Made by a program: the position numbers and the translations under genes. The notes beneath the pieces were generated by a model, which was not told the DNA's origin, did no database searches, and saw only the letters and a program-made list of their open reading frames with translations. Shown piece after piece: positions 13,074 through 59,727 of a DNA stretch of 64,000 nucleotides. Each line of letters starts with the position of its first letter. Position 1 is the first letter of the stretch. The DNA lies in the IMG/VR virus record IMGVR_UViG_3300044645_002359, positions 1 through 64,000 of that record; one strand, given 5' to 3'.

Positions 13074-13136
13074 CGGTGAACCGAACGAACCGGTTCGGTT
13101 CGCAGCCTTGTTTTCGCCTCGCGAAAACGCTATGAT
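13074..13136 (+). promoter_or_regulatory. Class I repeated promoter
   Basis: cggtgaaccg; TTGTTT-17-TATGAT; ATG 13143. Confidence 0.85.
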
Positions 13137-13142
13137 TATTGT

Positions 13143-13337: not shown

Positions 13338-13357
13338 CAGGAACCTCTCAGAAAACA

Positions 13358-13639: not shown

Positions 13640-13646
13640 CGGCCAC

Positions 13647-13719
13647 GCTCCTTTAGCTATCTGGTGAAAGCAGCAAACTCATAATTTGCCTCAGACGTGT
13701 TCGATCCACGTAAGGAGCA
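13647..13719 (+). tRNA. tRNA-Ile2/Met(CAT)
   Basis: gcaaa-ctcataa-tttgc. Confidence 0.85.
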
Positions 13720-14102
13720 TTCTAAAACAACGGAGTTACAAATGGATTATAACGATCTCTTAATCGAGATTTTAAACATGACACCGGAACAACGCACCCA
13801 GAAGGTGAAAGTTGCTGATGGCGACCACGGAATGGGTTTCTCTGAATCTGATTGTACAGACATCCGACGGCTTGAAATCTTAAACTGGTGCGGCCCGGCG
13901 CTGTTTCTTAACTAACTTTGATACCAATGCTAACACGAGAGCAAGAAACGTCAGTTATGCGTTTCTACGACGAACTTTCCCTTGATCATAGAGAATCTGT
14001 AAACTTCTTTGTTAACATGGTTTCCAGACTAACTGACTTTGAAGCCATCGAGATTGACACAACCAATAATAAAGTTCACTTAAAGAAACTTTGACTCCAT
14101 AA

Positions 14103-14176
14103 GCCTTGTTAGCTCAGCTGGATAGAGCACATCTTTCCTAAAGATGAGGTCGCAGGTTCAATTCCTGTACAGGGTG
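14103..14176 (+). tRNA. tRNA-Arg(CCT)
   Basis: catct-ttcctaa-agatg. Confidence 0.9.
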
Positions 14177-14237
14177 CTTTTCACAGGTAGGAACACAAAG
14201 GGGGTAGACTCCTCACACAACAAATCACTGAATCAAA

Positions 14238-14600
14238 ATGGAAAAAACAAAGAAACTGGTTAAAGAATACAAGTTGGACCCTGAAGAAACCAGGTACCTT
14301 CGGCCTTTGGAAGAGGACCTTGAAGACCTTCCCACAGACTTAAGTGAACTTGTAAGCCACATTAATTCTCTCATAGATGAAGGTTTTACGACCTTAGACG
14401 TAGACATCTCTGGATGGGAGGGGTCCGGTACAGCTTATCTTTCCTATTTCAAAGAAAGAGAGGAAGCTGACGCAGAATTTCAGGCACGACTGAAAGTTGA
14501 ACAAGAAAGGGAAGAAATAGCAGAAAGACGGAGGGTGACTATTGCGGGACTATCCCAGGAGCAAAGAGAGGCTTTGGGCATTAGTCAATACGCTTCTTAG
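14238..14600 (+). CDS. Hypothetical protein, C-terminal LSQEQREALGI
   Basis: ORF track. Confidence 0.7.
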   Translation: MEKTKKLVKEYKLDPEETRYLRPLEEDLEDLPTDLSELVSHINSLIDEGFTTLDVDISGWEGSGTAYLSYFKEREEADAEFQARLKVEQEREEIAERRRVTIAGLSQEQREALGISQYAS

Positions 14601-14630
14601 AGTTCTATTGAAAACAAAAACAAAGGCAAA

Positions 14631-14998
14631 ATGACGAAACTCAAAAGACTGACTGTGTATGACTACAAAATGCAGTCTAAAAAGAGCAATACACCGATGA
14701 TGCTACTTATGTTTTCAGTGGGGAAATTTCAGCAGTTATTGCGTATCTTCAAGATATCTTAAACGAGGGTTTCACCCACATGGATACAGAAAAGTGGGTT
14801 GAGGAGGAGTACGGCCATGGGTATGCAATGTGTGAAACTAAATATTACAAAGTTAGAGAGGAGACTGACGGAGAATATGAAAAACGGTGTGAAAACCACC
14901 GAAAACAAAAGGAAGCGGAAAAAGTTAAGGCGGAAGCAAGGAGGGTAGCAATGGAAGCATTGACCCTTGAGCAAAGGGGCGCACTTGGGATTCGTTGA
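14631..14998 (+). CDS. Hypothetical paralog of 14238; frameshift in A-run 14689-14693
   Basis: One extra A gives ...ILNEGFTHMDTEKW...LTLEQRGALGIR. Confidence 0.6.
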
Positions 14999-15116
14999 CT
15001 TCGACTTCCGATGGCGTAATAACCGAACCTTTTTGTACGGTAATCCGAACCCACACCCGAAAGTAAACGACCTCTAATAGCACCAACACCCTCCAGCCCC
15101 AAACCCTAAGCAAACC

Positions 15117-15575
15117 ATGCCAAGCCCCAAACAACCACAATCCGGCGAAGAAAAAGCTCTTCGCAAGCAGCAACGTCTGGAAAAAGAAGCTGAATTAAAG
15201 GCCGCCGTTATCCAGACTCAAAAGAAGGAGATGGAGAATTACTTCCAGGGTTTACCTCGTCTTATCCTTAATTTGCTTTCAGAACTTGATAAAGAGGTTA
15301 TTGACTATACCTTAAAACAACCGGAATCCAATAAATTCGAACTTACCACCCATAATTCAAACTTCGGCCTCTCAGATAATAGCCTTAATTTTACGGTATC
15401 TCAAGATGACTACTCTTACTCTGACTACGTTAATCTGAAATACAATATCGATAATGCCTTCTCAGTGATTGAGTCCATTAGACGCTCTCGTCTTGAAGAA
15501 GAAGAAAAACACCGTAAACGGCAAGCTGCCCTTGCAAAACTTGACCCCGAAGACCGTAAACTTCTAGGGCTTTGA
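15117..15575 (+). CDS. Hypothetical protein, C-terminal ALAKLDPEDRKLLGL
   Basis: ORF track. Confidence 0.7.
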   Translation: MPSPKQPQSGEEKALRKQQRLEKEAELKAAVIQTQKKEMENYFQGLPRLILNLLSELDKEVIDYTLKQPESNKFELTTHNSNFGLSDNSLNFTVSQDDYSYSDYVNLKYNIDNAFSVIESIRRSRLEEEEKHRKRQAALAKLDPEDRKLLGL

Positions 15576-16162
15576 TTGCCTTTGAGAAGCAAAGACTACT
15601 ATTCATGGCCAACCAATCAACCCAAATGAAGCCCGAATTTCGCATCCGAGAACGCCACTATGGCAGCGAATCTATACCTTATCGTACAACCTTTTTCTAC
15701 TGTGAGAAAAAATTTCTATGGTTCTGGATACCAGTGTTTAAGATAGATGTCGGTAAAGGCAGAGACGTAATCCGAGGTTTCGGGTCCCTGGAAAAGCCCA
15801 AAAGGCAATAAGTGACTATTGCGAATACACGAAGTTTCACTACCCCTGCTAAAACAATGACCGAACCCCCAATCAAAAACTGCTCTACATGCGGCCACAG
15901 CACCCCCGGTGAGTATAGCTCGCAAGTAGGCAAAGATCGATATCGCTTTTGCAATCTTTGCAGTGAGTCTTGTTCTTTGGTCAATAACCCAGCACTATCG
16001 GGCTCGCATTGGGCTTGCTTTAGACACAGCCAATGGGTACCTCAACCAACCTCGCCACCGAAACCCTCAACTATTTGGCAACAAATCGGTAAGGCAATCC
16101 TTGCCAAACTTACGCCGGGTTACCCAAAGTGAAGGGAGGTTCGGTCTTTGCTACGCAAAGGA

Positions 16163-16225
16163 CGGTTACCCGAACCGACCCGTTCGGTTCCCCCCCTTGT
16201 TTCTGCACTGCAGAAACGGTATAGT
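16163..16225 (+). promoter_or_regulatory. Class I repeated promoter
   Basis: cggttacccg; TTGTTT-17-TATAGT; ATG 16232. Confidence 0.85.
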
Positions 16226-16231
16226 ATATGT

Positions 16232-16624
16232 ATGGAAAGCACTACCTCTCGCCGTGGAATCCTCTGGTTGTCTGACCCAGACCAAGAGTTTCGGGTGTGC
16301 ACAACCTTTGCCAACGCTGCACGCCACTTGCATGTGACTTTGCAGTTTGGGATTTATGAGAACGAGATTCCTGCCGGGATTTTGGGTCACACTTTCTCTG
16401 TTCGGGCTACAAGCATCTGTTACAATACCCGAATTCAAGCTTTGCGCGTAGAACTGCCTACCGAACTCCAAGACGTTTGTCAAAACGAAAACCCTCATAT
16501 GACAATCTCGATGATTCCTGGAGTTCGCCCCGTTGAGTCAAACGAGATGTTGCAGGGTTCCTATCATTCCGAGTCAGTAGACTTTGAAATGTCTCTCATC
16601 TGCGAATTTTCACCCTTCAACTAA
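16232..16624 (+). CDS. 2H phosphoesterase (tRNA ligase CPD-like)
   Basis: Two HxT motifs: LHVTLQFG and PHMTIS. Confidence 0.7.
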   Translation: MESTTSRRGILWLSDPDQEFRVCTTFANAARHLHVTLQFGIYENEIPAGILGHTFSVRATSICYNTRIQALRVELPTELQDVCQNENPHMTISMIPGVRPVESNEMLQGSYHSESVDFEMSLICEFSPFN

Positions 16625-16835
16625 TCATGTTTCCTAACAGTCCAGAAAAAATCGTGTCCTTCCAGGTTGTACCTGCAAGCTGCCTTGAATACCCAAGCGA
16701 GCTAGGAGAGAGTGTGGTATATTTGACCAAAGAGCACGTGGTTGCCCTCGACTCAGAAGGGATGTTATGGGCAAGAAACGTTGACGAAACAGGTTGGACC
16801 TGCTTAAACCCTTCCTAAATTAAATCCGGAGACCA

Positions 16836-17105
16836 ATGACAGCAACTTCTTTTGATGACATCCTCGACGAATACTATGAGGAAATGAACCAATACATGAA
16901 AAATCTGGCAGTTGAACTAGGTGTGTCCATCTGGTGCGCGGAAGACGTTTGGTACTTGCGTACTCGTTCACGCCACACCCCGGAACTGGAAGCCGAACTG
17001 ATTGCACTCCATGCTGCAGGCACTCCTCCGAACATGTGTGATTTCGGTGTGACCGAAAACACTCAGGCTTACATCCGAGAATCTTGCGCTGACACCCGAG
17101 GGTGA
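16836..17105 (+). CDS. Hypothetical protein
   Basis: Tiled ORF. Confidence 0.65.
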   Translation: MTATSFDDILDEYYEEMNQYMKNLAVELGVSIWCAEDVWYLRTRSRHTPELEAELIALHAAGTPPNMCDFGVTENTQAYIRESCADTRG

Positions 17106-17480
17106 CTGTGTCAAGTAACGAAGATGAAAAAGACGCCGAACTGTTTCGATTCCGGGCGCAAGAACTATGTGCCCGCCGCAAAGAAGTTTCTAATGCACTA
17201 GAGTGGTGCAGAACTCCAACCGAAGCCCGAAACACCCTTTCCGCCATCATGACGTTGAAAAAAGCTTGTCCAAAGTCAAATCCCTAACTTCCGTAAAAAA
17301 AATGATCCCCAACATTAAATCCAAGGACATCGAAGTGCGCCTGCTCAGCGAACTTTCTCCGCAACTTCCGGCAGTCAAAGAACCTGACAATCGCCGTTGT
17401 GTATACAAGCAGATTCAAGCAGAATTTCGCCATGAGGGGTTGTACTGAACTGAATTAGTTCCCCCCAATTAAGGGGACAC

Positions 17481-17552
17481 ACCCACGTAGCACAGCGGTA
17501 GTGCAGCCGTTTCGTAAGCGGCAGGTCGCTGGTTCGAGTCCAGTCGTGGTTT
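17481..17552 (+). tRNA. tRNA-Thr(CGT)
   Basis: gccgt-ttcgtaa-gcggc. Confidence 0.85.
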
Positions 17553-24419: not shown

Positions 24420-24660
24420 GGTCTAAGGGCAAAGCCCTACCATACGGCTCAAAACTGGGTGTAGCTCGGGCAGACGTTGCGGTGGACAAGGGGGCAGTAC
24501 CCTTTAGCTCCACTTTCCCTTTACGGGGCTAATCTAGTTTCGACACCGTGAAAGTGTCACTTGAGTGAAAGCCGCTTGCATAAGCACAAAATAGACGCTA
24601 ACAAAATCGTCAAATTCGAGAGGACTGCCGTAGCCGTTTGAGCTATAGCATTCTGACTCA
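24420..24660 (+). ncRNA. ssrA: Circularly permuted (two-piece) tmRNA, tag (A)NKIVKFERTAVAV
   Basis: T arm and acceptor tagctcca end at 24512, upstream of 5' ggggctaatctagtttcgac at 24525; tag frame 24597-24641. Confidence 0.85.
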
Positions 24661-33439: not shown

Positions 33440-34429
33440 ATGATCGCCCTACCCAACGTCAAGGAAGAAACGGTTATCGAGCCGTTAGTCAAAGAACTGA
33501 TTCAGGTTACCGTTGAAACAGAAGGCGGTTTGGGTTACGTTCATAGGAAAACTTTTCAATTCAGTGCAGGAGAGACTCAAGTTCGCCTCAGTCCTTTGCC
33601 TACAGGAGTCAGGAAGATTCGAGTTAGGGCGGATATTGAGAGCAGCCAAACTTTGGTAGAACTTCTTCTGACTTTGGATGCTATTAACAATCTAGAGTAC
33701 CAAGGTCCTGTCGGATTAACCCTCCCATACCTTCCTTACAGCCGTCAAGACCGCGCCTGCGCACCTGGCGAGGCTTTTGCCCTTTCTGTTCTTGTAAACT
33801 GCCTCGTCCCGTATCTCGGTGCCGACGACACTATCACAACTTGGGATGTTCACAGCAGTGTGGCACGAACCCTTTTCGATAGTAAATTCCAGGGAGTATT
33901 CTATAATGTCTCCGCAGCGAGTCTCTTGCAGAATTTTGAGCTTGAAAAAGATGTGGTATTCAATCCCTCAACCATTGTCATTGCCCCAGATAAGGGTGCT
34001 GTAGACCGGGCCACAGAAGTTCAAAATGTCCTGGGACTAGAACGGACCGTGTACGCAACCAAAGTTCGCAATCCGGACGACGGCCAGATCCTAAGAACAG
34101 AAGTTCCCGAAGACGTGAATTACCGAGGCAAAAACCTTTTGATTGTAGACGACATTTGTGATGGTGGCCGCACTTTCATCGAACTTGCCAAGGTTTTGCG
34201 AGAATACGAGCCGTCACGTATTGACCTTTATGTGACACATGGGATCTTCTCAAAAGGTTTCAAAGTTTTTGAGGGCTTTATTGACAACATCTACGTAGCC
34301 AACCTGTTGATGGAACTCATTGAGCACCGCGATGGACGAAAGTCGTTCCCATCAGGTTCTGACCTCTGTGAAAATGTGGGATGTTATAGAGAATTTCCGA
34401 GCAACGTGACTTATCTCCGAAACATTTAA
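33440..34429 (+). CDS. prs: PRPP synthetase-like protein (NARP1 Adps-like)
   Basis: FSAGE...PYLPYSRQDR...DVHS...APDKGA...IVDDICDGGRTF. Confidence 0.9.
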   Translation: MIALPNVKEETVIEPLVKELIQVTVETEGGLGYVHRKTFQFSAGETQVRLSPLPTGVRKIRVRADIESSQTLVELLLTLDAINNLEYQGPVGLTLPYLPYSRQDRACAPGEAFALSVLVNCLVPYLGADDTITTWDVHSSVARTLFDSKFQGVFYNVSAASLLQNFELEKDVVFNPSTIVIAPDKGAVDRATEVQNVLGLERTVYATKVRNPDDGQILRTEVPEDVNYRGKNLLIVDDICDGGRTFIELAKVLREYEPSRIDLYVTHGIFSKGFKVFEGFIDNIYVANLLMELIEHRDGRKSFPSGSDLCENVGCYREFPSNVTYLRNI

Positions 34430-34467
34430 CCCTGCTCGACAACCCAAGTCAAACCTCTTAACAAACA

Positions 34468-35970
34468 ATGAAACTCTTCGCCCCTAACCTTACAGACTTC
34501 TACAAGACGGGTCACTACCGCCAGTACCCTGAAAACACGGAGTTCATCTACTCGAACATGACCGCACGGTCGGACCGTCTCGCCAAGATGCTCCCCGACT
34601 ACGACCACAAAGTAGTGGTAGCAGGTATTCTGGGCACAGCAGCTTGGTACCTTCGCGACCTTTGGAACGATACTTTCTTCAGTCAACCTAAAGACCGAGT
34701 ACTTGAAAAGTACCGCAGGCGAATGGACTCGGCTCTCGGACCTGGCGCCGTGAGCACAGCCCACCTGGCCGAACTTCACGACCTCGGTTACCTTCCAATC
34801 CGAGTAAAGGCTCTCCCAGAAGGCACCCGTGTCAATCTGCGCGTCCCCTTCCTCACGGTGGAGAACACACACCCCGACTTCTATTGGGTGACTAACTACA
34901 TTGAAACTGCCCTGTCGGCTGAAGTTTGGAAGCATGTCAACAATGCAACCATCGCCTACGAGTTTCGCCGCCTACTTGACCGATACGCAGATCTAACAGG
35001 GACTGACCGGTCTTTTGTTGACTTCCAGGCGCACGACTTTTCCTTCCGAGGAGTTAGTGGTATTCACGATGCTGCTGCCCACGGGATTGGACACCTGTTC
35101 TCCTTCAAGGGTACGGACAACATCCCGGCAATTGACTTCTTGGAAGATTACTACAACGTTGAAGGCGAATTTATCGCCGGTGGCGTCCCTGCTACCGAAC
35201 ACAGTGTTATGTGCACCGGGGGCCAAGATACTGAGATTGACACCTACAGGCGTCTGATTTCTGAAACTTACCCGACTGGTATTGTTAGCATTGTTAGCGA
35301 CACTTGGGACTACTGGAACGTTCTCACGAACATTGCTGCCCAACTGGAGGAGACGATCCTGAATCGCCAACCGGATGCCCTTGGCCTTGCCAAAGTTGTA
35401 TTCCGCCCTGATAGTGGAGACCCCGAGAGAATCCTTTGCGGCGACCCGGACGCTGAACCCGGCAGTCCAGCCTTCAAAGGCTCTCTGCAGCTCCTCTGGG
35501 ACCTCTTCGGAGGCACCGTAAACGAGCAGGGCTTCCGCGTCCTTAACCCTCGCGTGGGCCTCATCTACGGTGACTCGATCACCCTTCCTAGAGCTCTTTC
35601 CATTCTGGAGAACATGCACAGCAACGGATGGGCCAGCGGTAACGTTGTTTTCGGTGTGGGTTCGTACACTTACCAGTTCCACACTCGCGATACATTCGGC
35701 ATCGCTTTCAAGACGACTTGGACTCAAATCAACGGTCAACCTGTCGAAGTTATGAAAGATCCGATTACCGACCGTGGAACTAAGAAGTCGGCCAAAGGGT
35801 TGCTTCGTGTTGAAGAAGAGAATGGCGAGTACGTTCTCTACGAGCAACAAAGTCGAGATGAAGAGAGTCGAGGAGAACTGCGAACCGTATTTATGAATAG
35901 CCAGGTCTTCGAAAGACCCGACGAGAGTTTGACGAACATTCGCAGTCGTCTTGTCTCGCCAAATTCCTAA
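34468..35970 (+). CDS. nadV: Nicotinamide phosphoribosyltransferase-like protein (NARP1 Namat-like)
   Basis: TDFYKTGH...HDFSFRG...PATEHSVM...VSDTWD...RPDSGDP...KKSAKG. Confidence 0.92.
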   Translation: MKLFAPNLTDFYKTGHYRQYPENTEFIYSNMTARSDRLAKMLPDYDHKVVVAGILGTAAWYLRDLWNDTFFSQPKDRVLEKYRRRMDSALGPGAVSTAHLAELHDLGYLPIRVKALPEGTRVNLRVPFLTVENTHPDFYWVTNYIETALSAEVWKHVNNATIAYEFRRLLDRYADLTGTDRSFVDFQAHDFSFRGVSGIHDAAAHGIGHLFSFKGTDNIPAIDFLEDYYNVEGEFIAGGVPATEHSVMCTGGQDTEIDTYRRLISETYPTGIVSIVSDTWDYWNVLTNIAAQLEETILNRQPDALGLAKVVFRPDSGDPERILCGDPDAEPGSPAFKGSLQLLWDLFGGTVNEQGFRVLNPRVGLIYGDSITLPRALSILENMHSNGWASGNVVFGVGSYTYQFHTRDTFGIAFKTTWTQINGQPVEVMKDPITDRGTKKSAKGLLRVEEENGEYVLYEQQSRDEESRGELRTVFMNSQVFERPDESLTNIRSRLVSPNS

Positions 35971-36070
35971 ACTCAGGGCAAGGGAGAGTTTACTCTCCCT
36001 CTCCGGGGGGTATAATGATGAAAGAACTAACGTCCCCGTGCGATGGGGGAACACCTAAATCACTAAGGTT

Positions 36071-36661
36071 ATGGACTACAAGACAATCGCATACAAAAAG
36101 ACCATTCTGGTCCTCAATTCCACGTATGAACCACTCAATAGTACCTCATGGCGCAGGGCTAGAGTTCTAGTCTTGAAGGAAAAAGCTCATGTAGTTTCTA
36201 GTCGCACAATTCGCCTGAAAAACTACGTGAAGGTCCCCCAAGCCAAAATGGCTGCTGGAAAGCCTTCTCGCGCTCTCATTTTGAAGAGAGACGGACACAC
36301 CTGCCAGTACTGTGAGTATTCCGGTCCCAACCTTACAATCGACCACGTAGTTCCGAAGTCTCGAGGCGGCCAAGACACTTGGCAGAACCTTGTTACTAGC
36401 TGCCTAGAATGTAACAACTGCAAGGACAATCGTACCCCAGAAGAATGGGCTATGGCCCTGAAGAAGGTGTTTGCCAAAGAAACTACGAATGTTTCCCCCT
36501 TGCCATTCACCTGGGATAGCTTCCAGGTCGGAATGATGGAGACCAGAGTAAACAGCCGGGGCACAACCTTAATTGGAAAGCCGAAGGCACCTTACAGCAA
36601 GATGTCTGTTACGATTAGCACTGCCGAAGTTGACGAGTGGCGCGAATACGTTTACGTGTAA
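36071..36661 (+). CDS. HNH endonuclease (McrA-like, cyanobacterial type)
   Basis: RDGHTCQYC...TIDHVVPKSRGG..TWQNLVTSC.ECNN.K. Confidence 0.9.
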   Translation: MDYKTIAYKKTILVLNSTYEPLNSTSWRRARVLVLKEKAHVVSSRTIRLKNYVKVPQAKMAAGKPSRALILKRDGHTCQYCEYSGPNLTIDHVVPKSRGGQDTWQNLVTSCLECNNCKDNRTPEEWAMALKKVFAKETTNVSPLPFTWDSFQVGMMETRVNSRGTTLIGKPKAPYSKMSVTISTAEVDEWREYVYV

Positions 36662-38178: not shown

Positions 38179-39657
38179 CTCGCCATATGGGCGGAAACTT
38201 TGATGATTTCCTTAGTGATGACGGTCTGTTGGAAGATTGCGAATTGATGGCCCTAGGACGGGTTTCAGGCCATGAAACTAGCCAGGGGTTGGATAGTAAA
38301 GTGATTGAGGAACTAAGGAATATCCACCACGAGCTGCTTGAAAAATCAAAGAACCTCGACCCTGATTCCGAACGCATCCTTAGGGAAAATCTCTGGGACT
38401 TGTATGACTCTTGAGATCAATATGGATGATTTCTGGTTGCATGAAGAAACCAAGCATGAACTCCTACTTATGAGAGCCCGTAAAAAGGTTTGCTCTTATA
38501 ATCAGATTATACCGTCCGAGGATTTCACCACAGATAGCTACCTAGTTTTTCTAGAGTACGCTTCACCGAAGGAGCTGTCTGAGGATATTATAACAGAAGC
38601 TACATTTCAGAAAATTAACCCGATAGGGTGAGGACCATGAAAATTAAACACAAGGACATACTATCACGCGGGCGGTGGAGTGTAGGTGATTTACATCTCA
38701 ATGAAGAACTAGATGAAGAATACAATGTAGACAAAACTTTTGACACCTCGAAACGAGCCCGTTCTTATGCCAAGAGCCTCTTTCTCAGGAACCCTAGCCA
38801 CACCATCTTCCTGACTGCCATCAAGCGAATAAAATTCGATGGTAAATACCTAACTTGTACAAAGAAAGAGTGGGTTGTGACCTTGAAAAGTGGCAAAGTG
38901 AAGTTTAAAAGCAATGGTTTCTATTTTAGCTGATTACCAAAACTAAACGGGCGGTTAACCGCCATAGCCCCCAGGTGACAGTCAGTGTAGGATGACCTTG
39001 GATTTGATCCCCCTTTTTTACAAACCCGTACCCCGGCAGCAATGACATTTAAAGTTTTTACAGTCGAATACCGAGTTGGTGTAGTTTGTTATGATGCACT
39101 ACCCCAAGTAGTATGCACAAGTATGGGCGATTTAAAATCTTTTTGCAGTCTTTTGGAGAGAGATAAAGACGTAATTGAGTATAAAATTACCTCTTGTGGT
39201 GTTACTTTCAGTAAAAAAACTTTAGATGCTGAGTATTTGATGACCAAACTTGTAGAAAAGTTCAATTGGAATTATGAAATTCCAGTGGTTCCATTTGTTT
39301 TTGAGGGTGATTAAATGTTGTAGACAAACTTCCAGATTTGGCATATTCTTGAAATCAACTGGCTCGTCGTGAGCATCTGCCCCGTAATTGACCCATTCGC
39401 ATTACTACCCCACAGCAAAATGGCACGAATCACAGAAGAACAAATCCTGAGCACAATCGGCGAACTTTGGCTTGTCGAGGTAAGAGAGTCTGAACGCGGG
39501 TGGGGAGGTGAGACCTGGAACGAACTTTTCACCACCTTCGGGGAAGCCCAGACTAGATTCATGGAAATTAACAAGGGTAATCCAACCGATCACGTTCCTG
39601 ATTATTACATTGTTGCGTCCAAACCAAGGGTGGCCAAGATACACTTTAACTGAGGGG

Positions 39658-39720
39658 CGGTAAACCGCCCTACCCGGCTCGGTTTCCCGGCTTGTTTCTG
39701 CCACGCAGACACGGTATCAT
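39658..39720 (+). promoter_or_regulatory. Class I repeated promoter
   Basis: cggtaaaccg; TTGTTT-17-TATCAT; ATG 39727. Confidence 0.8.
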
Positions 39721-39726
39721 TAGTTC

Positions 39727-40392
39727 ATGAACGAAGCTCCCTCGAAAACCATGAAACCGCTTCCTGAAGCTGTGACACAAGCTATCCTGTTGAAACCAGG
39801 GGACAGCGTCCAAGTCCCGGCTGTCGGCGTAAAAACAAAGGACGGTTGGAAGTACGAGACCCAAGTCCCTTACCTCCACTTTCGGCAACAACCTGTAGAA
39901 CCCGGTCTGTATCTAGTCACAGACATTTGGATGCACCCGAACGCGACAAATCCGGCTGACCCCTCTTCTTATTGTTACACTCTAAGGAGAATCCGTAGTA
40001 AGCGACGTCTTACTAGCTTAGAGTCAACCTGGAGGGAAAAGTACAAAAAGTCTGGATTTCAAGAGAAGTACTTTTCTTCCCAAAAAGTGAACTACAATTG
40101 CCTCGATTGGGATCAACTTATTAAGGAAGGTAAAGTTAAAACCGATGTGTACAAACCGGGTGAGAAATTCAACCTAGACGAGTTCAAGAAGGATCTTGGT
40201 CAAGTGCTTTACAAGCACAAAGCAACTTTCCGACTTCGTCGCAGTTATGACGGGCCTTGGGATGCTGAGGGTTTTAATGTACTGATGGTATCTGTTCAAG
40301 GGGAAGATAAGGCCACACTTGCGACCGAGTGGCTGGACTTCCCTATCAGACGGTCGGAACCCACCTGGAAGGACGGTAAGCCGAACCGCTGA
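39727..40392 (+). CDS. Hypothetical protein (leaderless)
   Basis: 221-aa ORF. Confidence 0.75.
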   Translation: MNEAPSKTMKPLPEAVTQAILLKPGDSVQVPAVGVKTKDGWKYETQVPYLHFRQQPVEPGLYLVTDIWMHPNATNPADPSSYCYTLRRIRSKRRLTSLESTWREKYKKSGFQEKYFSSQKVNYNCLDWDQLIKEGKVKTDVYKPGEKFNLDEFKKDLGQVLYKHKATFRLRRSYDGPWDAEGFNVLMVSVQGEDKATLATEWLDFPIRRSEPTWKDGKPNR

Positions 40393-40436
40393 GGGCGGTT
40401 AACCGCTCTTGTCCACACCCGAAAAACCTCTATAAT
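40374..40436 (+). promoter_or_regulatory. Class I repeated promoter variant
   Basis: cggtaagccg and cggttaaccg; TTGTCC-16-TATAAT; ATG 40443. Confidence 0.75.
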
Positions 40437-40442
40437 GGAACC

Positions 40443-41082
40443 ATGGAACAAAATCTGCGCCACTACCTGATCGACTGGCTTAACGAGTGGGGCTACAATG
40501 CCCTGGAAGAGTTGGCCGAATTTGACATCCGCGTTGCTCGCGATGAGCGTTACCCGAACCTCTTCAACCTGAAGTACGGCAGCGTGATGGCGGACAAGTC
40601 GCTGCCGATCGTTCGCGCTTGTCGTGGTGCTGTGGTTGAGCGTGTTGATAACGATGGCGACCACTCGCCGTACTACCGCCTGGTAGCGTATGCTTTCGAT
40701 CGTTTCTTCAACGTCGGCGAAGGTTATTGTCACGAACTAGATTGGTCGCATACCAAGGTTTATGAGAAGTACGATGGTTGCTTACATGCTGAGACTAAGG
40801 TAGAAACCTCAAAAGGTACAAACTATCAAAGAGATTTGCGAGAAGCCTGATGAAGTCAAAGTTTACGGCTTCGACCACAAATCTGAAGAGAAAGTAGAAG
40901 TTCCCATTGAGGCTGTCTCTGTCAAACAATGCAAGCCTGACACCCAGTGGTACAAAATCACATTGGAGAACGGAAACACCATCGTTCTAACAGGGAACCA
41001 TAAAGTCTGGGATGAAGTGTCCCATTCCTACATCAGAGTAGATCAACTTTCTGGAGAAGAGGAACTAAAGGAGTTTACTTGA
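40443..41082 (+). CDS. RNA ligase 1 N-extein plus N-half of split intein (frameshift at ~40810-40824)
   Basis: CRG...YAFDRFFN..E...YEKYDG|CLHAETKVET...LTGNHKVW...EELKEFT*. Confidence 0.85.
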
Positions 41083-42131
41083 TACTTGACACTTTCACTA
41101 AGCTCATCTAGACTCATGTCCCGAATGTCTCTCTCCCAGATGTATATTACCGTAAACCCGTATTTCTCCGCAACTCCCTTCTTCTCTATATCCCTCTCCC
41201 AAATTTCTTCCACAAGGGTACTACCCCCTCCCGGAAGGTGAATACTGTCCCCAAACGAATAGATTTCGGGGTTAGCGTGCCAATAGTCCCCCTGGACCTC
41301 TATTAGCACTTTGGTCCCCGTAATCAAAAAGTCAAATTGCCTTCTGGCAACAAATCGAGAGAACTGAAATTTCAGACCCGCAAGTTCTAAAGCTTGAGAC
41401 ACCTTTTCTTCAACCTTGTTCATTTTCGTAAAAAACTTACCACTCAAGAAGTCATCATTGACTTGCTTCCAGAATTTCCTTGTAAGCTCTCCTCTTCTTT
41501 CGGAGTACTCCTGCTTTCTTTCCTCGCCCCACCCCCTTCTCGTTTCCCTGAGTTTTTCTGCTATTGAACTCATCTTTTCCAAGGAAAAAGAAGCTCTAGT
41601 CAGAGAAATTGCCTCCGGGTTGGTAACCCTAAGCTTACCATAGCGCTCAAGATGAGTTTCGTTTATCTTTTCTTTGACATCTGAAAGTTGGAAAACATTG
41701 TCCACCCCGTACTTTGATCTAACTGTTTCATTTCTCTTGTGGTAAAATTCAGTTCCCTTACAGAGAACATTATTCACTCCGTACTTTTCTTGAGAAACTT
41801 TCACCATTTTACTTTTCTTTTGATTTGAACCATTAGCTTCTTTAATTTTTCTTACAGGTATCTCAAAGTAGTCCATTAGAAAAGATAGTCTCCTGCCCGG
41901 TAATCCAAAAAGCTCTTTGAAGTCCGGGAAGCTGAACCCCTTAATCAGGTACAAGTGCTTTAGTTTTCTGCCACTCTCTAGTTTCAGCGCCGGGTAGCTA
42001 AGCTTCAAGGTGTTAAACCTGTACTCCTTTTCCGATAAACCAGGCCCCTTAAGACAGGTTTTCAAATGAATCTTCCTTCCACACTCCTTAAGACAAACAA
42101 AGCAAACCAAACTCTTAACTAGAACCCCCAT
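41043..42131 (-). mobile_element. Free-standing Vsr/DUF559-like homing endonuclease, antisense, between the intein halves
   Basis: KYGVNNV/KYGVDNVFQ repeats; FDF...LIEVQGDYWHA...IYIWERDI. Confidence 0.85.
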
Positions 42132-43008
42132 GAAAATCTCCAAAATAGAAAAGATAGAAAGTGACTCCCACCTATATGATATACAAACTTTTACCCGTAA
42201 CTTCTACGCTGAGGGGGTATTGGTACACAATAGCTTAATCAAGCTCTTCAACTACAACGGGGACTGGATTGTTTCGACGTCCGGATCGGTGGCAGCAGCT
42301 TCGGAAGTTGGTTCCACTGGGCGTTCTTTTGAGGAACTGTTCTGGCTTGTCTTTGACGAAGTTGGTTATTCTCGGGAATGGCTCGATGAGGGTCTGTGCT
42401 ATATCTTCGAACTGTGCCACCGCGATAACCGCATCGTTGTGGATTATGCAGAGCCTCAGTTACCGCTGCTGGCTGTGCGCGACCGTTCCAACGATTTCGA
42501 AGAGCTTGAACTTGTTTCGTTCTGCAACCTGTTCGGGTTCAAAGCTGCCAAGTCGTATGACCTGGGGAGCATGGAAGGCTTGATGGCAGTCGTGAACGAT
42601 CGTGGCGCCGACCACGAAGGGTTTATCCTGTTTGACGGTGTTGGTCGTGCGAAAGCAAAGTCCGATGTGTACTGCCAAATGCACCGTGTTCGCGGAAACG
42701 GCGATCCGGACTTCTCCGAGCTTTTTCTGAACGACGATTTGGAAGAATTCCTACTGCACTTCCCTGAGTACCGTGAGGGCTTCGACGTTCACCTGCGTTC
42801 CATCGACATAATGGAAGTTGCTGTGGAAGAGATCATGGGGGTTTACAACCACTTGAATCAGAAGGACTTTGCTCAAGTTGTAATTGCTAAGGAGAGGGAA
42901 CTGTCGGGGGCTTGTTTTGCGATTCGCTCCGGTAAAGTTGGCTCCTTCGGTCAGTGGCTGGAAGGCTTGTCTCCGAAGAAGCTGGATGCCCTGCTGGGTA
43001 TCAACTGA
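42130..43008 (+). CDS. C-half of split intein (34 aa) plus RNA ligase 1 C-extein
   Basis: MKISKIEK...LYDIQ...NFYAEGVLVHN|SLIKLF..GDW.VSTSG...YIFEL...HEGFILFD...AKAKS. Confidence 0.9.
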   Translation: MKISKIEKIESDSHLYDIQTFTRNFYAEGVLVHNSLIKLFNYNGDWIVSTSGSVAAASEVGSTGRSFEELFWLVFDEVGYSREWLDEGLCYIFELCHRDNRIVVDYAEPQLPLLAVRDRSNDFEELELVSFCNLFGFKAAKSYDLGSMEGLMAVVNDRGADHEGFILFDGVGRAKAKSDVYCQMHRVRGNGDPDFSELFLNDDLEEFLLHFPEYREGFDVHLRSIDIMEVAVEEIMGVYNHLNQKDFAQVVIAKERELSGACFAIRSGKVGSFGQWLEGLSPKKLDALLGIN

Positions 43009-43365
43009 CCTTAATTCCCTTTAGTAAAATCCAAACAAAATGTCAATGTCAACCTACGTCTACGGTTATCGTTCCCCTGACGATGACGAACATCAAAAAC
43101 ATCTCAAAGTTCTAAGAGTTTGCCGCGAAGTTGGGGTTTCCCTTCCAGATGAAACTTCGGACTATTTCGACGGTGTCAAACCAGAGTATATCGACCCAGA
43201 TTGTACTCTGAAAGTGAGGATCCCGTTCATGAAGTCGTCCCCTGTCCTGGTTCCGCAGGCTATGAGATCATCCTTTCGGAGATTCCCCAAGGTGTCCATA
43301 AAATTCGATTTGAACATAGTTGGTAATCCCTAGTTTTCTTTCTTACACATGCACTCAACGAAACT

Positions 43366-43671
43366 ATGAACCCGAACAACGACGATCTGAACTATCTGCT
43401 TAGCCTACCCACCCCCAGACTGCTCAAGGTATTTCAAAGAGTGCGCGGCCAGTTGAGCGTGATAAATGAGTGTGACTGGGACAATTATAAACTTCAAGAC
43501 GAGGAACTTAACTGGCTTCCTGAAAATGCGGATGTTTCGAGGTGAGTTACAGACGAACACGGTCACCCTAAGTTTAACCCAATATATGGGGCTTTGCAGA
43601 TCAGAAATCTAGTGAATCTAAAAGAGAATCTTAAGGCAGAACTTGGCAAAAGGGAACATGTCACCCGTTGA
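43366..43671 (+). pseudogene. Hypothetical ORF with in-frame TGA at 43543
   Basis: ...DVSR*VTDEHGHP...LKAELGKREHV. Confidence 0.55.
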
Positions 43672-43925
43672 ATTCATTACAATTTCATCCTTTATATAAA
43701 ATGATTTCAGTTCAATTTACAAACGCTGATTATGGCAATTCACCCATCGACCATTACCCAGTGACACTTCCTTCAATTCCTGAGAGAGATAGTTTGGTGG
43801 AACTAGATGGAAAGTTACACCGTTTCAATGGCTCAACCTGGGAAGTCTGGTCCCATAGCAATACACACGAGGTTAAGGTTGGCTTGTGTCCCATTTATTC
43901 CGAAAGTAATTAACACGTCAGCAAA

Positions 43926-44399
43926 ATGGCAAAGTCTCAACATTATATCAATGCCCATGGTGAAGAAATTGACTTCACAGTTCAAGTGGCTACTCGTCCG
44001 AACCTTCGAGACAGTATTTCATACATGTTTCAATACCGTGGAATGAACATCCTTGAGCAGATGTTTGACAAGTGCGAAGTGGATCTCACCGTAGAAAAAT
44101 TTGACCTTGAGTACCCCGAGCGATGGGCAAACTTGCTAGAGCTAAGAGCCATCCCTGAGAGAATGATGGTATGTTTTCCCAATCTAAAGACGGTATTCAT
44201 TCAAACCCACTCTGTTTACCTTATTCAGAGCGTACATAATGGTCACGTATTTATTGAGAAATTAATGGATGAAGAAGGTAACGAGGTGATCTACGATGAG
44301 GGAGACCCCAAAGATTTGACAAAACGCTATTGCCCACTTAATCGTGAGTTCAAGGGAATGTTCGTAGCCACTCCCAGTTCGATTCAACATATCCTTTAA
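43926..44399 (+). CDS. Hypothetical protein
   Basis: PERWANLLE...IQTHSVYLIQ. Confidence 0.7.
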   Translation: MAKSQHYINAHGEEIDFTVQVATRPNLRDSISYMFQYRGMNILEQMFDKCEVDLTVEKFDLEYPERWANLLELRAIPERMMVCFPNLKTVFIQTHSVYLIQSVHNGHVFIEKLMDEEGNEVIYDEGDPKDLTKRYCPLNREFKGMFVATPSSIQHIL

Positions 44400-44759
44400 A
44401 TGGCCGAAATCAAAGTAGTCAACAAGTACCACATCGGCGGGAGGCCGATGAAGCCCCCGGAAGGAGTCATTCGTGCAGCAGTTTACCGCAGCACACCTTT
44501 AGGCAACCCTTTCAAAATGGTTAACTCTTCTATTGAGGAGAGGAACAGGGTGTGCGACGCTTACGAACAATGGTTACCAGCTAAGCTCCTGCAAGATGGA
44601 GCTGAGTTAGCCCAGTTCAACGAACTACTGAAACTAGCTCAAACACCGGGGTGCGAGGCACTAGAACTAATCTGCCATTGCGCCCCAAAACGTTGCCACG
44701 GAGACACCATTAAACGCTTACTCGAAACAGAACTTCAAAATGAAATTACCTTTGACTAA
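44400..44759 (+). CDS. DUF4326-like protein
   Basis: VYRSTPLGNPF...LICHCAPKRCHGDTIK. Confidence 0.85.
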   Translation: MAEIKVVNKYHIGGRPMKPPEGVIRAAVYRSTPLGNPFKMVNSSIEERNRVCDAYEQWLPAKLLQDGAELAQFNELLKLAQTPGCEALELICHCAPKRCHGDTIKRLLETELQNEITFD

Positions 44760-44975
44760 CGTCCTGTCAGAACTCTCTACTGAAGACAAGAATCTTTACA
44801 CGGCACTTTTGAGTGTCGTCACAGTTGTAATTCTGCTCCTGCTGGGAATGACCTCTTGTGCTATCACGGAAAGTCGAGAGCGGATTAATAGAACAATCCT
44901 AGATTGCAGAAGTACAGCTGTTAATAGAGTCGAGTCAACAGATACACTCGACTTGATTTGTGGGAAACTGCCTCA

Positions 44976-45716
44976 GTGACACACTCCCGATATGCCATTA
45001 TCGGAGACGTTCACTCTCAAGCATTCCCCTTGAAGAATGCCCTAGACTACTGTTACGATAACAACTTAACTCCAATTATTCTTGGCGACCTTTTTGATTC
45101 GCAGTGTCAGGTTTCAGAGTCAGTTTCTGTTTACAACCTTGTAAGAAAGTCTCAGGGCGATCTTGGAGCGATTGTACTTCGCTCGAACCACCAGCACCTC
45201 CTTGAGAAACTTATCAAAAAAGAAGAGGTTTCCCTTAAAAAAGACTTGTGTAAAACAGTCAGAGAGTTTCAAGAGGCAGGAATTTGTCTAACTGAGGTAG
45301 GGCAGTGGCTTGAAACTTTCCCTTACGTTTTCGCCTTCCGAGACTCTCGAGGACAAGAGTACAGAGTCGCTCACGCGGAAATTCCTGCTTCAGTAAAGGT
45401 ACCGAACTTCGATCAAACCTGGATGTATCTTCACCCCACGGAACAAGAGCTGCGATGCCTGCTTTGGGGCGCCGATTACTCCCTGCCCAACCGTGACCGG
45501 TTCTGGTGGCTCGGGAAGCCCGAGAGGGACTGGGTAGCCGTCGCGGGCCATTACCACAAGGTTGTCAACGATGGCCGCTCTCTCGTCCTCGACGCTGGGT
45601 GTGGAGGGAAGACCCGCGCCTGGTACGACAAGCGTCCCCCTGCGTTACTTCTCTACGACGTTGAGGTCCAAAGCCTGATTGAATTCCCGGCTTTTGATAA
45701 CTCGGTCGTAGGGTAA
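44976..45716 (+). CDS. Calcineurin-like metallophosphoesterase (paralog A)
   Basis: GDVHSQ...LGDLFD...SNHQ...AH...GHYH. Confidence 0.85.
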   Translation: MTHSRYAIIGDVHSQAFPLKNALDYCYDNNLTPIILGDLFDSQCQVSESVSVYNLVRKSQGDLGAIVLRSNHQHLLEKLIKKEEVSLKKDLCKTVREFQEAGICLTEVGQWLETFPYVFAFRDSRGQEYRVAHAEIPASVKVPNFDQTWMYLHPTEQELRCLLWGADYSLPNRDRFWWLGKPERDWVAVAGHYHKVVNDGRSLVLDAGCGGKTRAWYDKRPPALLLYDVEVQSLIEFPAFDNSVVG

Positions 45717-48780: not shown

Positions 48781-48815
48781 TATTGCATGAACATGACACG
48801 AGCCTAATCTACAAA

Positions 48816-49940
48816 ATGGCAAACATCGAACGCAAACTTGCATCTGTCCGCAAAGTAACGGACATTCGCCCCATCCCCGACGCTGACGCCATCGAATGCG
48901 CCATTGTAGGTGGTGGTTGGCCCGTGGTAGTGAAAAAGGGAGAATTTCAGGTTGGCGACCTCGCCATCTACTTCGAGATTGATTCCTGGATTCCTCACGA
49001 ACTTGCCCCATTCCTCTCCAAGGGGAAGAAACCAAGGGAGTATAATGGAGTGAAGGGGGAGAGGCTGAAAACTGTCAGGCTCCGTGGTCAAGTCTCCCAG
49101 GGTCTCCTGCTCCGCTTCTCGGACATCTCTCCAAGCTTCTACGTTGTCTCGCTAGCCGAACCTTACGGGGGGAGGGAATTTCTCCGAGTTGATCAGTGCG
49201 TGTGGGAGGAAGGTGAGGACTTCACTCTAGAGTTCGGAATTCAGAAATGGGAAGCTCCTGTCCCAGCTTGCTTGGCTGGTCAAGTTCGCGGGAACTTTCC
49301 TAGCTTCCTCGTGAAGACGGACCAGGAACGTTGTCAGAATGTTGTGGAGGAAATCTTTGAGCGCCATAAGGGTGAAACCTACGAAGTTACTATCAAACTT
49401 GATGGGTCTTCCTGCACGGTCTACGTCAAGGACGGGGAAGTTGGGGTGTGCAGCCGTAACCTTGACCTCAAGGAAACCGAAGGCAATAGTTTCTGGAAGG
49501 CTGCTAGGGATCAGGGCATTATCGATGCTATGCTTGCATACAATGGGAAGACTGGTCACAGTATTGCCTTGCAGTCGGAAACCCTTGGAGAAGGCATCCA
49601 GGGCAACCAGGAAGGAATCAAGGGACAACGCCTATTCCTGTTTGACATCTTCGATATCGACAGCCAAACTTACATGAAGCCAGGGGCCAGAATGAACCTC
49701 TTGGACAAGTACCTAGTTCCATTAGGCGCTGATTTAACCCATACCCCTGTCCTACACCCCGCAATGTGTGTAACTGATAGTTCCGCCAACCTTGATGAGC
49801 TACTAGCGTACGCCGATGGCCCGTCCATGAACCCCAAAGTCAAACGCGAAGGCTTAGTATTCAAGTCCAATGACTCTGAGTTTTCCTTCAAGGCCATTAG
49901 TAATGAATGGCTCTTATCCAAGGGAAAGAAGGGTGGCTGA
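48816..49940 (+). CDS. RNA ligase, Rnl2/DRB0094 family
   Basis: RKLASVRKV...YFEIDS...SQGL...KTDQER...KLDGSS...EGLVFK...FKAISNEWL. Confidence 0.92.
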   Translation: MANIERKLASVRKVTDIRPIPDADAIECAIVGGGWPVVVKKGEFQVGDLAIYFEIDSWIPHELAPFLSKGKKPREYNGVKGERLKTVRLRGQVSQGLLLRFSDISPSFYVVSLAEPYGGREFLRVDQCVWEEGEDFTLEFGIQKWEAPVPACLAGQVRGNFPSFLVKTDQERCQNVVEEIFERHKGETYEVTIKLDGSSCTVYVKDGEVGVCSRNLDLKETEGNSFWKAARDQGIIDAMLAYNGKTGHSIALQSETLGEGIQGNQEGIKGQRLFLFDIFDIDSQTYMKPGARMNLLDKYLVPLGADLTHTPVLHPAMCVTDSSANLDELLAYADGPSMNPKVKREGLVFKSNDSEFSFKAISNEWLLSKGKKGG

Positions 49941-56624: not shown

Positions 56625-58118
56625 ATGACAACCTTTTTGAACGCACTCGAAAACGAATTCAATACTACGACCACAGCCAACGGCGCAAAAGCCTATAAGT
56701 CCACAGGTTCCAAGAACCTGGACCTTTTCGGGAAGATTGCAGCCTGCCGCAACGACGTTAGCGAAGCAACTCGCCTATTCAACCTTGCTTATGCTGAAGA
56801 CCCTGAGACCGCAACCAGAATCCTGTTCTGGGCACGTGACATTCGCGGTGGCCAGGGTGAGCGTAAGATCTTCCGAGAAGTTTTCAAGGAGCTGGTTCGC
56901 AATGATGCTACAATCGGCGCGAAACTCATTAGTTTGATCCCGCAGTATGGACGCTGGGATGATGTGGTAGCCCTTGAAGGCACCCTAGTTTGGAATGTTG
57001 CACTCGAGGCAATCAAGGCACAGCTGAACGCTGACTTGAACACCGAAGTTGGAAACTCCGTGTCATTGCTTGCGAAATGGCTCCCTTCCATTAACGCCTC
57101 TAGCAAGGAGTCTAAGAGGATTGGCCGCAAGATTGCCGAGGCAATGGGTTGGAATGAGCGTCAATATCGCAAGGCTTTGACTGCTCTTAGGACACAAATC
57201 AAAATTGTCGAACAGGCAATGTGTGCCCGTGAGTGGGATGCCATTGATTATAGCAAGTTGCCTTCTCGTGCAGGCTTCATGTATCGGAAAGCTTTCGCAA
57301 ATCGTGATGGCGACCGTTACCAGTCCTACCTGGATGCAGTTAAAAAAGGTGAAGCAAAGATCAATGCCGGTACTTTGTATCCGTATGACATCGTTGAGAA
57401 GTGTCTCTACAACCAAGAATCCAATGATACTCTAGAAGTAATGTGGAAAGCCCTGCCGAACTTCATGGAGGGCAAGGAATTGAATGGGCTTGTTGTTGCC
57501 GATGTTAGCCGTTCTATGTCAGGCCGTCCAATGGCAGTATCCATCTCTCTGGCGATGTATATCGCAGAGCGTAATACCGGCATCTGGAAGGACAAGTTCC
57601 TAACATTCTCAGGGAATCCTTCTCTACAGACTGTGACTGGCAGTAGCCTTTCAAACAAGGTTCGCAACCTTAGCCGAGCAGATTGGGGCGGTAACACTGA
57701 TATTCAGAAGACGTTTGACCTTATTCTGGATACTGCAGTTCGGAACAACATTCCAGAGTCAGACATGCCCCGCAAACTGATTATTGTCTCAGACATGCAG
57801 TTTGATAACTGTGTTATCATGGGAGGTAATTACTCCGGTCGTATGAGTTATGGCGGAGCCCGAGTCACCAACTACGAAGCAATCCGCATCAAGTACGCTC
57901 AAGCTGGCTACAGCTTGCCCGAAGTTATCTTCTGGAATGTCGATTCCTCAGATAACGTCCCGATGAAGGCACATGATTCCGGTACCGCTCTCGTTAGCGG
58001 TTGCTCTCCGTCAATCCTGACCGCAGTTCTTACCAGAAACGCAATCACCCCATTGTCCCTAATGAGAGATGCTGTTTATACTGAAAGGTATGACGCTGTG
58101 GGTGCGGTCTTTAACTGA
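56625..58118 (+). CDS. TROVE/Ro60-related DUF2828 + vWA protein
   Basis: T.NGA.AY.STG...LDLF...RDIRGG.GER...YGRWDD...AKWLPS...ADVSRSM...SDMQFD...FWNV...SG.SP. Confidence 0.85.
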   Translation: MTTFLNALENEFNTTTTANGAKAYKSTGSKNLDLFGKIAACRNDVSEATRLFNLAYAEDPETATRILFWARDIRGGQGERKIFREVFKELVRNDATIGAKLISLIPQYGRWDDVVALEGTLVWNVALEAIKAQLNADLNTEVGNSVSLLAKWLPSINASSKESKRIGRKIAEAMGWNERQYRKALTALRTQIKIVEQAMCAREWDAIDYSKLPSRAGFMYRKAFANRDGDRYQSYLDAVKKGEAKINAGTLYPYDIVEKCLYNQESNDTLEVMWKALPNFMEGKELNGLVVADVSRSMSGRPMAVSISLAMYIAERNTGIWKDKFLTFSGNPSLQTVTGSSLSNKVRNLSRADWGGNTDIQKTFDLILDTAVRNNIPESDMPRKLIIVSDMQFDNCVIMGGNYSGRMSYGGARVTNYEAIRIKYAQAGYSLPEVIFWNVDSSDNVPMKAHDSGTALVSGCSPSILTAVLTRNAITPLSLMRDAVYTERYDAVGAVFN

Positions 58119-58359: not shown

Positions 58360-58403
58360 TTTAAATAAAGTCAACTTCCCTGGTAGTTCACCGGGGCAAC
58401 AAT

Positions 58404-58520
58404 GGGGAATGGTGCAATGGCAGCACACGTAATTAACGGTTACCTTGGATAAGGTACAGACAGCAATTACAAAAATTCCATTCCACGGACGTGACGGAGG
58501 TTCGATTCCTTCTTCCCCAT
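58404..58520 (+). ncRNA. tRNA body (Gly TCC-like) with CAGCAA hairpin inserted in the anticodon stem
   Basis: D and T arms; gtacctt-ggat-aaggtac-aga-cagcaa; cc-attccac-gg. Confidence 0.7.
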
Positions 58521-59609: not shown

Positions 59610-59727
59610 GGGACCGTAGCTCAACTGGTAGAGCGCTAAATAAAAGTTATCTTGTACAAGATACGTCAGCAATTAAAAAATACCTCGTTTAAAGGAGTGG
59701 TTGCAGGTTCGAGTCCTGCCGGTCCCA
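59610..59727 (+). ncRNA. tRNA body (Lys TTT-like) with CAGCAA hairpin between the D and anticodon arms
   Basis: gggaccg/cggtccc; tatcttg-tac-aagata-cgt-cagcaa; cct-cgtttaa-agg. Confidence 0.7.

Follow-up and report, generated by a model that had tools for sequence, protein, structure and literature searches.

The window analysed here is a 64,000-nt stretch, the first 64 kb of the 201,260-bp viral contig IMGVR_UViG_3300044645_002359, and carries a gene for an RNA ligase of the T4 RNA ligase 1 (Rnl1) type that is divided in two by a split intein. The locus consists of an Rnl1-type N-half, an antisense endonuclease open reading frame (ORF) and a C-half, and every feature named in a preliminary description of this DNA is present where that description had placed it (Table 1). 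Both ligase halves lie on the plus strand and are colinear with an intein-less allele, so that the original order and orientation of the gene have been kept. The G+C content of the insert is 36-42%, compared with 52-53% in the exteins. In frame 0 the N-half ORF (40443-40850) runs through ...YEKYDG into Cys-Leu-His-Ala and 19 further residues, and then meets two TGA codons at 40848-40853. The Cys codon of the intein occupies 40779-40781, setting the N-extein boundary at 40778, a small correction to the preliminary description. The rest of the N-intein, including block B (LTGNHKVW, 40987-41010), is carried in the +1 frame, which is open from 40804 to a stop at 41080-41082. The C-half ORF (42130-43008) begins with MKISK, reaches VLVHN at the end of the C-intein and continues with the Ser that opens the extein (SLIKLF). 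An N-intein of about 100 aa with its stop at 41080 and a 34-aa C-intein at 42130-42231 had both been predicted, and both are read there. The endonuclease ORF starts on the minus strand at an ATG at 42131, or alternatively at a TTG at 42143, and stops at 41043. Its overlap with the N-half is 40 nt long, and the palindrome CATG (42129-42132) is common to its start codon and that of the C-half. A profile search of the 64-kb window found no further copies of the intein, the endonuclease or Rnl1.

Table 1. Features of the fractured rnl1 locus, followed by those of the surrounding window (positions are window positions).
Feature	Position	Strand	Basis or remark
Promoter-like site TTGTCC-16-TATAAT	40409..40436	+	Consensus scan; ends 6 nt 5′ of the N-half ATG
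Rnl1 N-extein, 112 aa, C-terminal KYDG	40443..40778	+	Pfam RNA_lig_T4_1, Rnl1 hidden Markov model (HMM)
N-intein start, frame 0 (Cys1, block A), into premature double stop	40779..40850	+	Translation, DNA alignment
N-intein remainder, +1 frame	40822..41082	+	Pfam Intein_splicing, N-intein HMM
Homing endonuclease gene, 362 aa	41043..42131	-	Pfam, family profile, AlphaFold2 (AF2)/Foldseek
C-intein, 34 aa, blocks F and G, ends VLVHN	42130..42231	+	Pfam Intein_splicing
Rnl1 C-extein, 258 aa, Ser+1 first (SLIKLF)	42232..43008	+	Rnl1 HMM, T4 Rnl1 alignment
Array of 35 transfer RNA (tRNA) genes	18-17552	+	Two with odd anticodon loops: 2165-2237, 4478-4549
Permuted (two-piece) transfer-messenger RNA (tmRNA)	24457-24641		Rfam RF04321, 73 bits; ARAGORN tag peptide ANKIVKFERTAVAV
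Phosphoribosyl pyrophosphate (PRPP) synthetase, nicotinamide phosphoribosyltransferase (nicotinamide adenine dinucleotide, NAD, salvage), then free-standing HNH endonuclease	33440-36661		
Metallophos phosphoesterase	44958-45716		
Second, intact RNA ligase	48783-49940		PHA02142 OB fold and PF09414, Rnl2-like
Ro/TROVE-like RNA-binding protein	56625-58118		phrog_850, 4e-152
Two 118-nt tRNA-like elements	58403-58520, 59610-59727		Rfam hits

The identity of the host gene is supported by both halves. Pfam RNA_lig_T4_1 matches each of them (2.2e-5 and 1.4e-8), and a local Rnl1 HMM is covered by the N-extein at positions 1-114 (3.5e-67) and by the C-extein at positions 112-369 (4.5e-140). The motif I lysine is K109 (codon 40767-40769), and the C-extein holds motifs III, IV and V as FELCH (42406-42420), EGFILF (42616-42633) and KAKSD (42652-42666). 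An intein-less allele, protein P0005 (locus L004), is encoded by an uninterrupted gene of 370 codons on a syntenic 282-kb contig, its DNA being 84.6-86.3% identical to that of the window exteins. Across the insertion site it reads ...KVYEKYDG followed by SLIKLFNYNG, the exact predicted splice product, so that KYDG-SL is the sequence that splicing would rebuild, as had been proposed. P0005 aligns with T4 Rnl1 (2C5U; phmmer E 1.4e-7) with KYDGSL placed on KEDGSL, and the downstream FE, EG and KxKS motifs of T4 Rnl1 are matched as well (FEf, EGy, KiKSD). Its AlphaFold model (predicted local distance difference test score, pLDDT, 89) is matched to 2C5U by Foldseek over the whole length (E 1.3e-14, template modelling (TM) score 0.65, 399 aligned columns); this comparison, made on the intein-less homologue, shows both domains of the Rnl1 fold, the helical one at the C-terminus among them. 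It follows from the alignment of P0005 with T4 Rnl1 that in the fractured form K109 and motifs III-V reside on different polypeptides, which bears out the earlier statement that the adenylated Lys is parted from the other ligase motifs. All 82 columns that are invariant in 37 intein-less homologues are retained in the window exteins. The host gene is taken to be rnl1, of the T4 RNA ligase 1 family (PF09511), with a mobile cassette inserted between the Gly and the Ser of its motif I (KYDG/SL), and the explanation of which this forms part is considered quite probable as a whole. Codons 1-5 after the insertion site (window 42232-42246 versus L004:5337-5351) specify the same amino acids and differ at 8 of 15 bases, a difference that could reflect co-converted flanks or target-site immunity.

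The inserted sequences carry the marks of a class 1 split intein of the HINT type, namely Cys1, TGNH (the TxxH of block B), YDIQT...VLVHN and Ser+1. Both pieces are matched by Pfam Intein_splicing, the N piece at profile positions 8-70 (8.6e-6) and the C piece at 122-155 (3.3e-3), and an N-intein HMM scores the remainder in the window at 1.6e-27. With RNA_lig_T4_1 and Intein_splicing matching both halves, a fractured Rnl1 with a split intein at motif I, as first proposed, is what the profiles describe. The split lies at the canonical endonuclease-insertion point and leaves an N part of 100 aa (in intact relatives) and a C part of 34 aa; the solved intein closest to the C-intein is NrdJ-1 (8UBS, 8.5e-5). 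In intact copies the two plus-strand ORFs would yield two polypeptides whose intein halves are predicted to associate into a HINT fold, and class 1 trans-splicing through Cys1, TxxH, the terminal HN and Ser+1 would join G112 to S113. The spliced ligase would receive its adenylated K109 from one polypeptide and motifs III-V from the other. An alternative is that the halves remain unspliced even in the intact relatives and serve as non-covalent ligase fragments, or are a relic killed by insertion of the endonuclease. Unspliced assembly has a precedent in NrdA of Aeromonas phage Aeh1, whose gene is split by a homing endonuclease (PMC3045599). Against this possibility, which seems very improbable, stands the conservation of Cys1 and TGNH over 75 divergent split N-halves, with the terminal HN and Ser+1 present in all C-halves examined. 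The ratio of nonsynonymous to synonymous substitution (dN/dS) also lies far below 1, for the exteins as for the two intein halves (0.014-0.075 for the C-intein between cassette types), and the split cuts the active-site motif I, whose KxDGSL requires a peptide bond at this point to be restored.

The preliminary description took the minus-strand ORF for a Vsr/DUF559-like endonuclease with an overlap at either half and a CATG in common with the C-half, and the ORF fits this description. Pfam matches it to DUF7487 (1.3e-11), DUF559 (7.7e-4) and Vsr (0.027), and its domains are a CxxC-H-C zinc finger (42054-42104), the helical, KYG-repeat, DNA-binding DUF7487 (~41622-41834) and an EDxHD/Vsr-like nuclease (~41097-41426). 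The search for homologues found 585. Residues E241, D267, E278, D282, H285 and D314 are invariant in 57 homologues, and the family also keeps a G281-D282-x-W284-H285 block and the N-terminal C-x2-C...H...C finger. The family profile matches the catalytic domain of I-Bth0305I (3R3P, 1.5e-6) and E. coli Vsr (0.009); a single-sequence phmmer comparison with the PDB gave a weak match to 3HRL only (0.13), so that the family profile is needed to reach 3R3P. The best Foldseek matches of the AF2 model (pLDDT 89.9) are 3R3P (TM 0.73) and 1VSR (TM 0.65). These profile and model matches place the endonuclease in the EDxHD family as Taylor et al. (PMC3239194) define it. Its dN/dS is 0.09. It is the sole credible minus-strand gene in the window and has a GGAG 6 nt upstream of its ATG, which is unusual here, a core Shine-Dalgarno sequence being found in only 10 of 69 plus-strand ORFs. 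Related copies are at various stages of decay: the L007 endonuclease (L007:3915-5000) has lost its zinc-finger end through a 1-bp deletion, and several of the sense-oriented fractured Rnl1 loci L018-L023 and L029-L030 retain only remnants of 100-130 aa (near 4000-4400). Such decay is expected of a homing cycle.

The same three-gene layout is found at seven further distinct loci, and three cassette types occur among the close relatives. Within a type the DNA from intein through endonuclease to intein is 94.7-100% identical, while the surrounding exteins are 66-89% identical. Sliding windows give 95-100% identity through the cassette and on into the flanks, for ~180 nt of the N-extein and ~40 nt of the C-extein, before a fall to 38-87%; type-specific synonymous variants adjoin the junction. 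This is the pattern expected of endonuclease-driven gene conversion with co-conversion of flanks. Between types, the N-intein, the C-intein and the endonuclease all show a dN of 0.05-0.37, with dS either saturated or above 0.9. Cassette identity across diverged exteins, co-conversion and dN/dS far below 1 together argue that the element is functional and mobile in general. The endonuclease would cut intein-less rnl1 alleles of co-infecting relatives, and recombinational repair would then copy the cassette with short flanks, a course of events to which the mosaic identity points indirectly.

The copy in the window is damaged. Compared with L001-L003 it is without two bases between 40819 and 40820 (ggtac--aaact here, ggtacGAaaact in the relatives), within the interval of ~40810-40824 where a frameshift had been noticed. 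The frame shifts after 13 intein codons, and the N-half is cut to 135 aa, before block B. Intact N-halves of 213 or 209 aa occur in L001-L003, L007, L010 and L011, and of 208 and 210 aa in L012 and L013, all of them in the same antisense layout; L001 and L002 lie on 189- and 241-kb contigs, and the L001 N-intein is 98.7% identical in DNA to that of the window. The 135-aa product is found in identical form on two contigs from two samples (3300044645 and 3300059473), with entries in sets derived from NCBI, JGI, Logan and ENA, the second contig being known by its gene calls rather than its DNA. An exact-pattern scan of the viral collection that allowed the deleted and the intact form returned the window's own contig only, and the same deletion-site pattern had no match in the JGI metagenome collection, which evidently lacks the window's sample. 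The occurrence of the truncated product on two contigs from two samples indicates that the window copy is probably dead. The deletion is probably real and the N-intein of this genome probably dead, and most likely no spliced ligase is made. The preliminary description had held that a genuine frameshift with no frameshifted product would leave the N-intein dead; this probably applies to the window copy, and not to the close relatives, which have intact copies. Damage is absent from the endonuclease, the C-half and both exteins, a sign that the inactivation was recent. Loss of the window Rnl1 may be tolerated because of the second RNA ligase encoded downstream.

Several points weigh against this explanation. 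Splicing, ligase activity and endonuclease cleavage are all deduced from sequence. In a scan for sigma-70 promoters and terminators neither the endonuclease nor the C-half gained a credible promoter, and the hits did not rise above those in shuffled sequence (5 sigma-70 consensus sites in the region against 3.4 expected, with no enrichment). The C-half is without a Shine-Dalgarno sequence, although the same holds for most genes of this phage. Finally, the deletion could be an assembly error or a minority variant common to related assemblies. If it were such an artefact or variant, the phage would carry an intact N-half and make a functional trans-spliced Rnl1. The undamaged state of the rest of the locus would agree with this, with all 82 invariant extein columns retained, the endonuclease ORF at full length and the cassette 98.7-100% identical to that of intact relatives, as would the short A run that abuts the deletion. 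An artefact is nevertheless unlikely, since the identical 135-aa protein recurs on two contigs from two samples in the NCBI, JGI, Logan and ENA derived sets, and a 2-bp loss is atypical of short-read error. A real deletion could also be bypassed by +1 (or -2) ribosomal frameshifting to give a slightly shorter, active N-intein. The +1 frame is open from 40804, and a shift anywhere in 40804-40847 restores the intein remainder. Inspection of this interval revealed no known slippery or stimulatory motif, the relatives encode the intein in a single frame, so that frameshifting would be a one-off, and the product would be short of one block A residue. Programmed frameshifting was rejected because the interval has no slippery motif, and a bypass of this kind is scarcely credible. 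A recently inactivated member of a functional, mobile lineage remains the preferred explanation for the window copy.

The arrangement of the three genes bears on their expression. The reverse insertion places the stop of the N-half within the antisense tail of the endonuclease gene and provides, in one CATG, the start codons of the endonuclease and the C-half. On the simplest reading a plus-strand transcript would span the N-half, the antisense endonuclease region and the C-half, and transcription of the endonuclease would oppose it. The promoter-like site just upstream may give the N-half a leaderless start. TAxxxT boxes ending 6-8 nt upstream of the ATG are seen at several gene starts (36974, 39727, 40443 and 46440). 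Together with the paucity of Shine-Dalgarno sequences, they suggest leaderless or Shine-Dalgarno-independent starts. Such a layout poses the problem of expressing a selfish endonuclease together with its fractured host gene when the two overlap on opposite strands.

Motif I of Rnl1 is widely occupied by inteins. A search for inteins at this site, suggested at the outset, found many, and Rnl1 proteins with motif I inteins form dozens of 50%-identity clusters in public metagenomes, both contiguous and split. An exhaustive HMMER search with an intact N-half as query returned 1,260 proteins, and the 147 new hits among the best 150 were sorted by pattern. They include 53 split N-halves (KxDG/C) with an Rnl1-sized N-extein, 21 split N-halves with a longer one, 11 contiguous Rnl1 proteins with inteins of 351-411 aa (LAGLIDADG_2 by Pfam in all 4 of those scanned), 2 contiguous mini-inteins and 38 intein-less KxDG/S proteins. 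In IMG/VR, 54 loci have the intein block B pattern. One site therefore holds the empty allele, LAGLIDADG inteins, mini-inteins, sense-split and antisense-split forms, a natural series for the gene-breaking model whose members are rarely available together.

Other ligases are affected too. At L015:2485-5699 a related split intein fractures an Rnl2-type ligase (PF09414), entering it two residues past motif I (KIDGEN/C...HN/CS); the endonuclease there is of the same family and in sense orientation, and a Pnkp gene adjoins. The 21 split N-halves with longer N-exteins have ~160-295 aa there (e.g., P0272, P0287 and P0352), and in P0260 an AAA_33 kinase domain is fused upstream of a KxDG/C N-half. 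These longer N-terminal regions and the kinase fusion imply that fracture at motif I extends to other ligase architectures. Rnl1, an RNA-repair enzyme, is thus added to the hosts of split inteins, and an active-site motif common to nucleotidyltransferases emerges as a recurrent intein target.

Fractured Rnl1 genes with the same endonuclease family occur in both orientations, the endonuclease being sense in L018-L030 and L065 and antisense in L032-L037 and the window's group. It lies on the minus strand in the window and in 10 further distinct relatives. Where a near-full-length endonuclease accompanies the intein at loci other than Rnl1, it is in sense orientation (L038-L070 include loci without a detectable copy). 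In a maximum-likelihood tree of 31 endonucleases, sampled with a bias toward the window's relatives, the 11 antisense members cluster together as one group (support 88/79), a single change is seen in 90% of bootstrap trees, and the endonucleases of the sense fractured Rnl1 and Rnl2-type genes fall outside. Identity within the antisense group goes down to 38%. This grouping suggests that the antisense layout arose once, long ago, and has diversified from then on. A more far-reaching proposal joins several claims. It holds that this is an old, single-origin antisense lineage with a reverse-captured endonuclease, transcribed against an all-plus array, whose expression is inversely coupled to that of the ligase through convergent transcription and sense-antisense pairing. 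In addition, motif I of Rnl1 would be an unrecognised intein hot-spot with every stage of the homing cycle, and the window copy would be homing-competent and spread a dead intein, acting as a gene-killing drive. Taken jointly, these claims are rather doubtful.

The genome around the locus is that of a jumbo phage, as indicated by the 35 tRNAs, the permuted tmRNA, the NAD-salvage genes, the second RNA ligase and the Ro-like protein on a contig of 201,260 bp. A megablast search with positions 39000-44500 had no match in 50,697 phage records, so that no close relative was found among deposited phage genomes, and tblastn returned distant RNA ligases and endonucleases only. Since few bacterial groups typically have permuted tmRNAs, that of the window may hint at the phage host. 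The trio of PRPP synthetase, nicotinamide phosphoribosyltransferase and HNH endonuclease also stands upstream of the split ligase in L011. The second RNA ligase and the phosphoesterase follow the broken Rnl1 at a distance of a few kb downstream and point to an RNA-repair neighbourhood in which the loss of Rnl1 could be buffered. Pfam or PHROGs scans of 11 window ORFs (ligase neighbours and some farther away) showed no canonical Pnkp; kinase genes adjoin the split ligase in L013. The two tRNA-like elements may be Y-RNA/YrlA-like partners of the Ro-like protein.

The Rnl1 host and the antisense layout had both been called unfamiliar in the preliminary description. No paper on an Rnl1 intein or on an antisense split layout was found, the literature searched being incomplete and its silence no proof of novelty. 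The novelty is nonetheless smaller than it first appeared, as motif I is a heavily used intein site, fractured Rnl1 genes with sense endonucleases exist and a 2025 preprint reports anti-sense endonucleases in inteins. The combination of an Rnl1 host with a reversed endonuclease is widespread in metagenomes and apparently undescribed.

The closest known systems are the fractured genes of Dassa et al. 2009 (PMC2677866), which pair split inteins (gp41-1, NrdJ-1, IMPDH-1 and others) with Vsr-like or GIY-YIG endonucleases and in which the three ORFs lie on one strand in all 26 loci and the hosts are gp41, IMPDH, DnaE, NrdA, NrdJ, DNA ligase and terminase; Rnl1 is not listed. As in those genes, an extein-N/intein-N ORF and an intein-C/extein-C ORF stand at one locus with a free-standing endonuclease between them, the endonuclease is of the same family and overlaps the neighbouring ORFs, and the origin is a phage. 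The nearest solved intein, NrdJ-1, itself comes from a fractured gene, and the diverged NrdJ-1-related N/C intein pairs are candidate orthogonal trans-splicing tools, to be sought in the intact relatives and not in the broken window copy. The window differs in that its endonuclease is antisense, converging on the N-half tail with an overlap and having its CATG in common with the C-half start. It differs also in that its N-extein is not followed in frame by a complete N-intein, which L001-L003, L007 and L010-L013 do have.

Anti-sense VSR-like (EDxHD) endonucleases have been described in actinobacteriophage inteins (bioRxiv 10.1101/2025.01.02.630785) and resemble the present one in lying on the strand opposite the intein. 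Their hosts are the DNA polymerase, minor capsid, terminase or thymidylate synthase of actinophages, and the cases are listed not as two-ORF fractured genes but under inteins whose endonuclease regions are non-canonical; the sole RNA ligases with inteins in that survey are of the RtcB type. I-Bth0305I (PMC3239194, 3R3P), the prototype of the EDxHD homing endonucleases, shares with the window endonuclease the C-terminal nuclease fold, the catalytic acidic and His residues and a multidomain build with an N-terminal DNA-binding region. Its gene lies in a group I intron of recA; the window enzyme bears a CxxC-H-C finger at its N-terminus, along with the KYG repeats of DUF7487. Within Rnl1 itself, the sense fractured genes (L018-L030 and L065) share the site (KxDG/C...HN/S) and the endonuclease family and differ in carrying the endonuclease on the ligase strand. 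Contiguous inteins occupy the identical Rnl1 site (KxDG/C...VHN/S) in P0267, P0276 and P0290 (LAGLIDADG) and in P0274 and P0308 (mini-inteins). In these a single ORF contains an in-frame LAGLIDADG_2 endonuclease or none, and trans-splicing is not needed.

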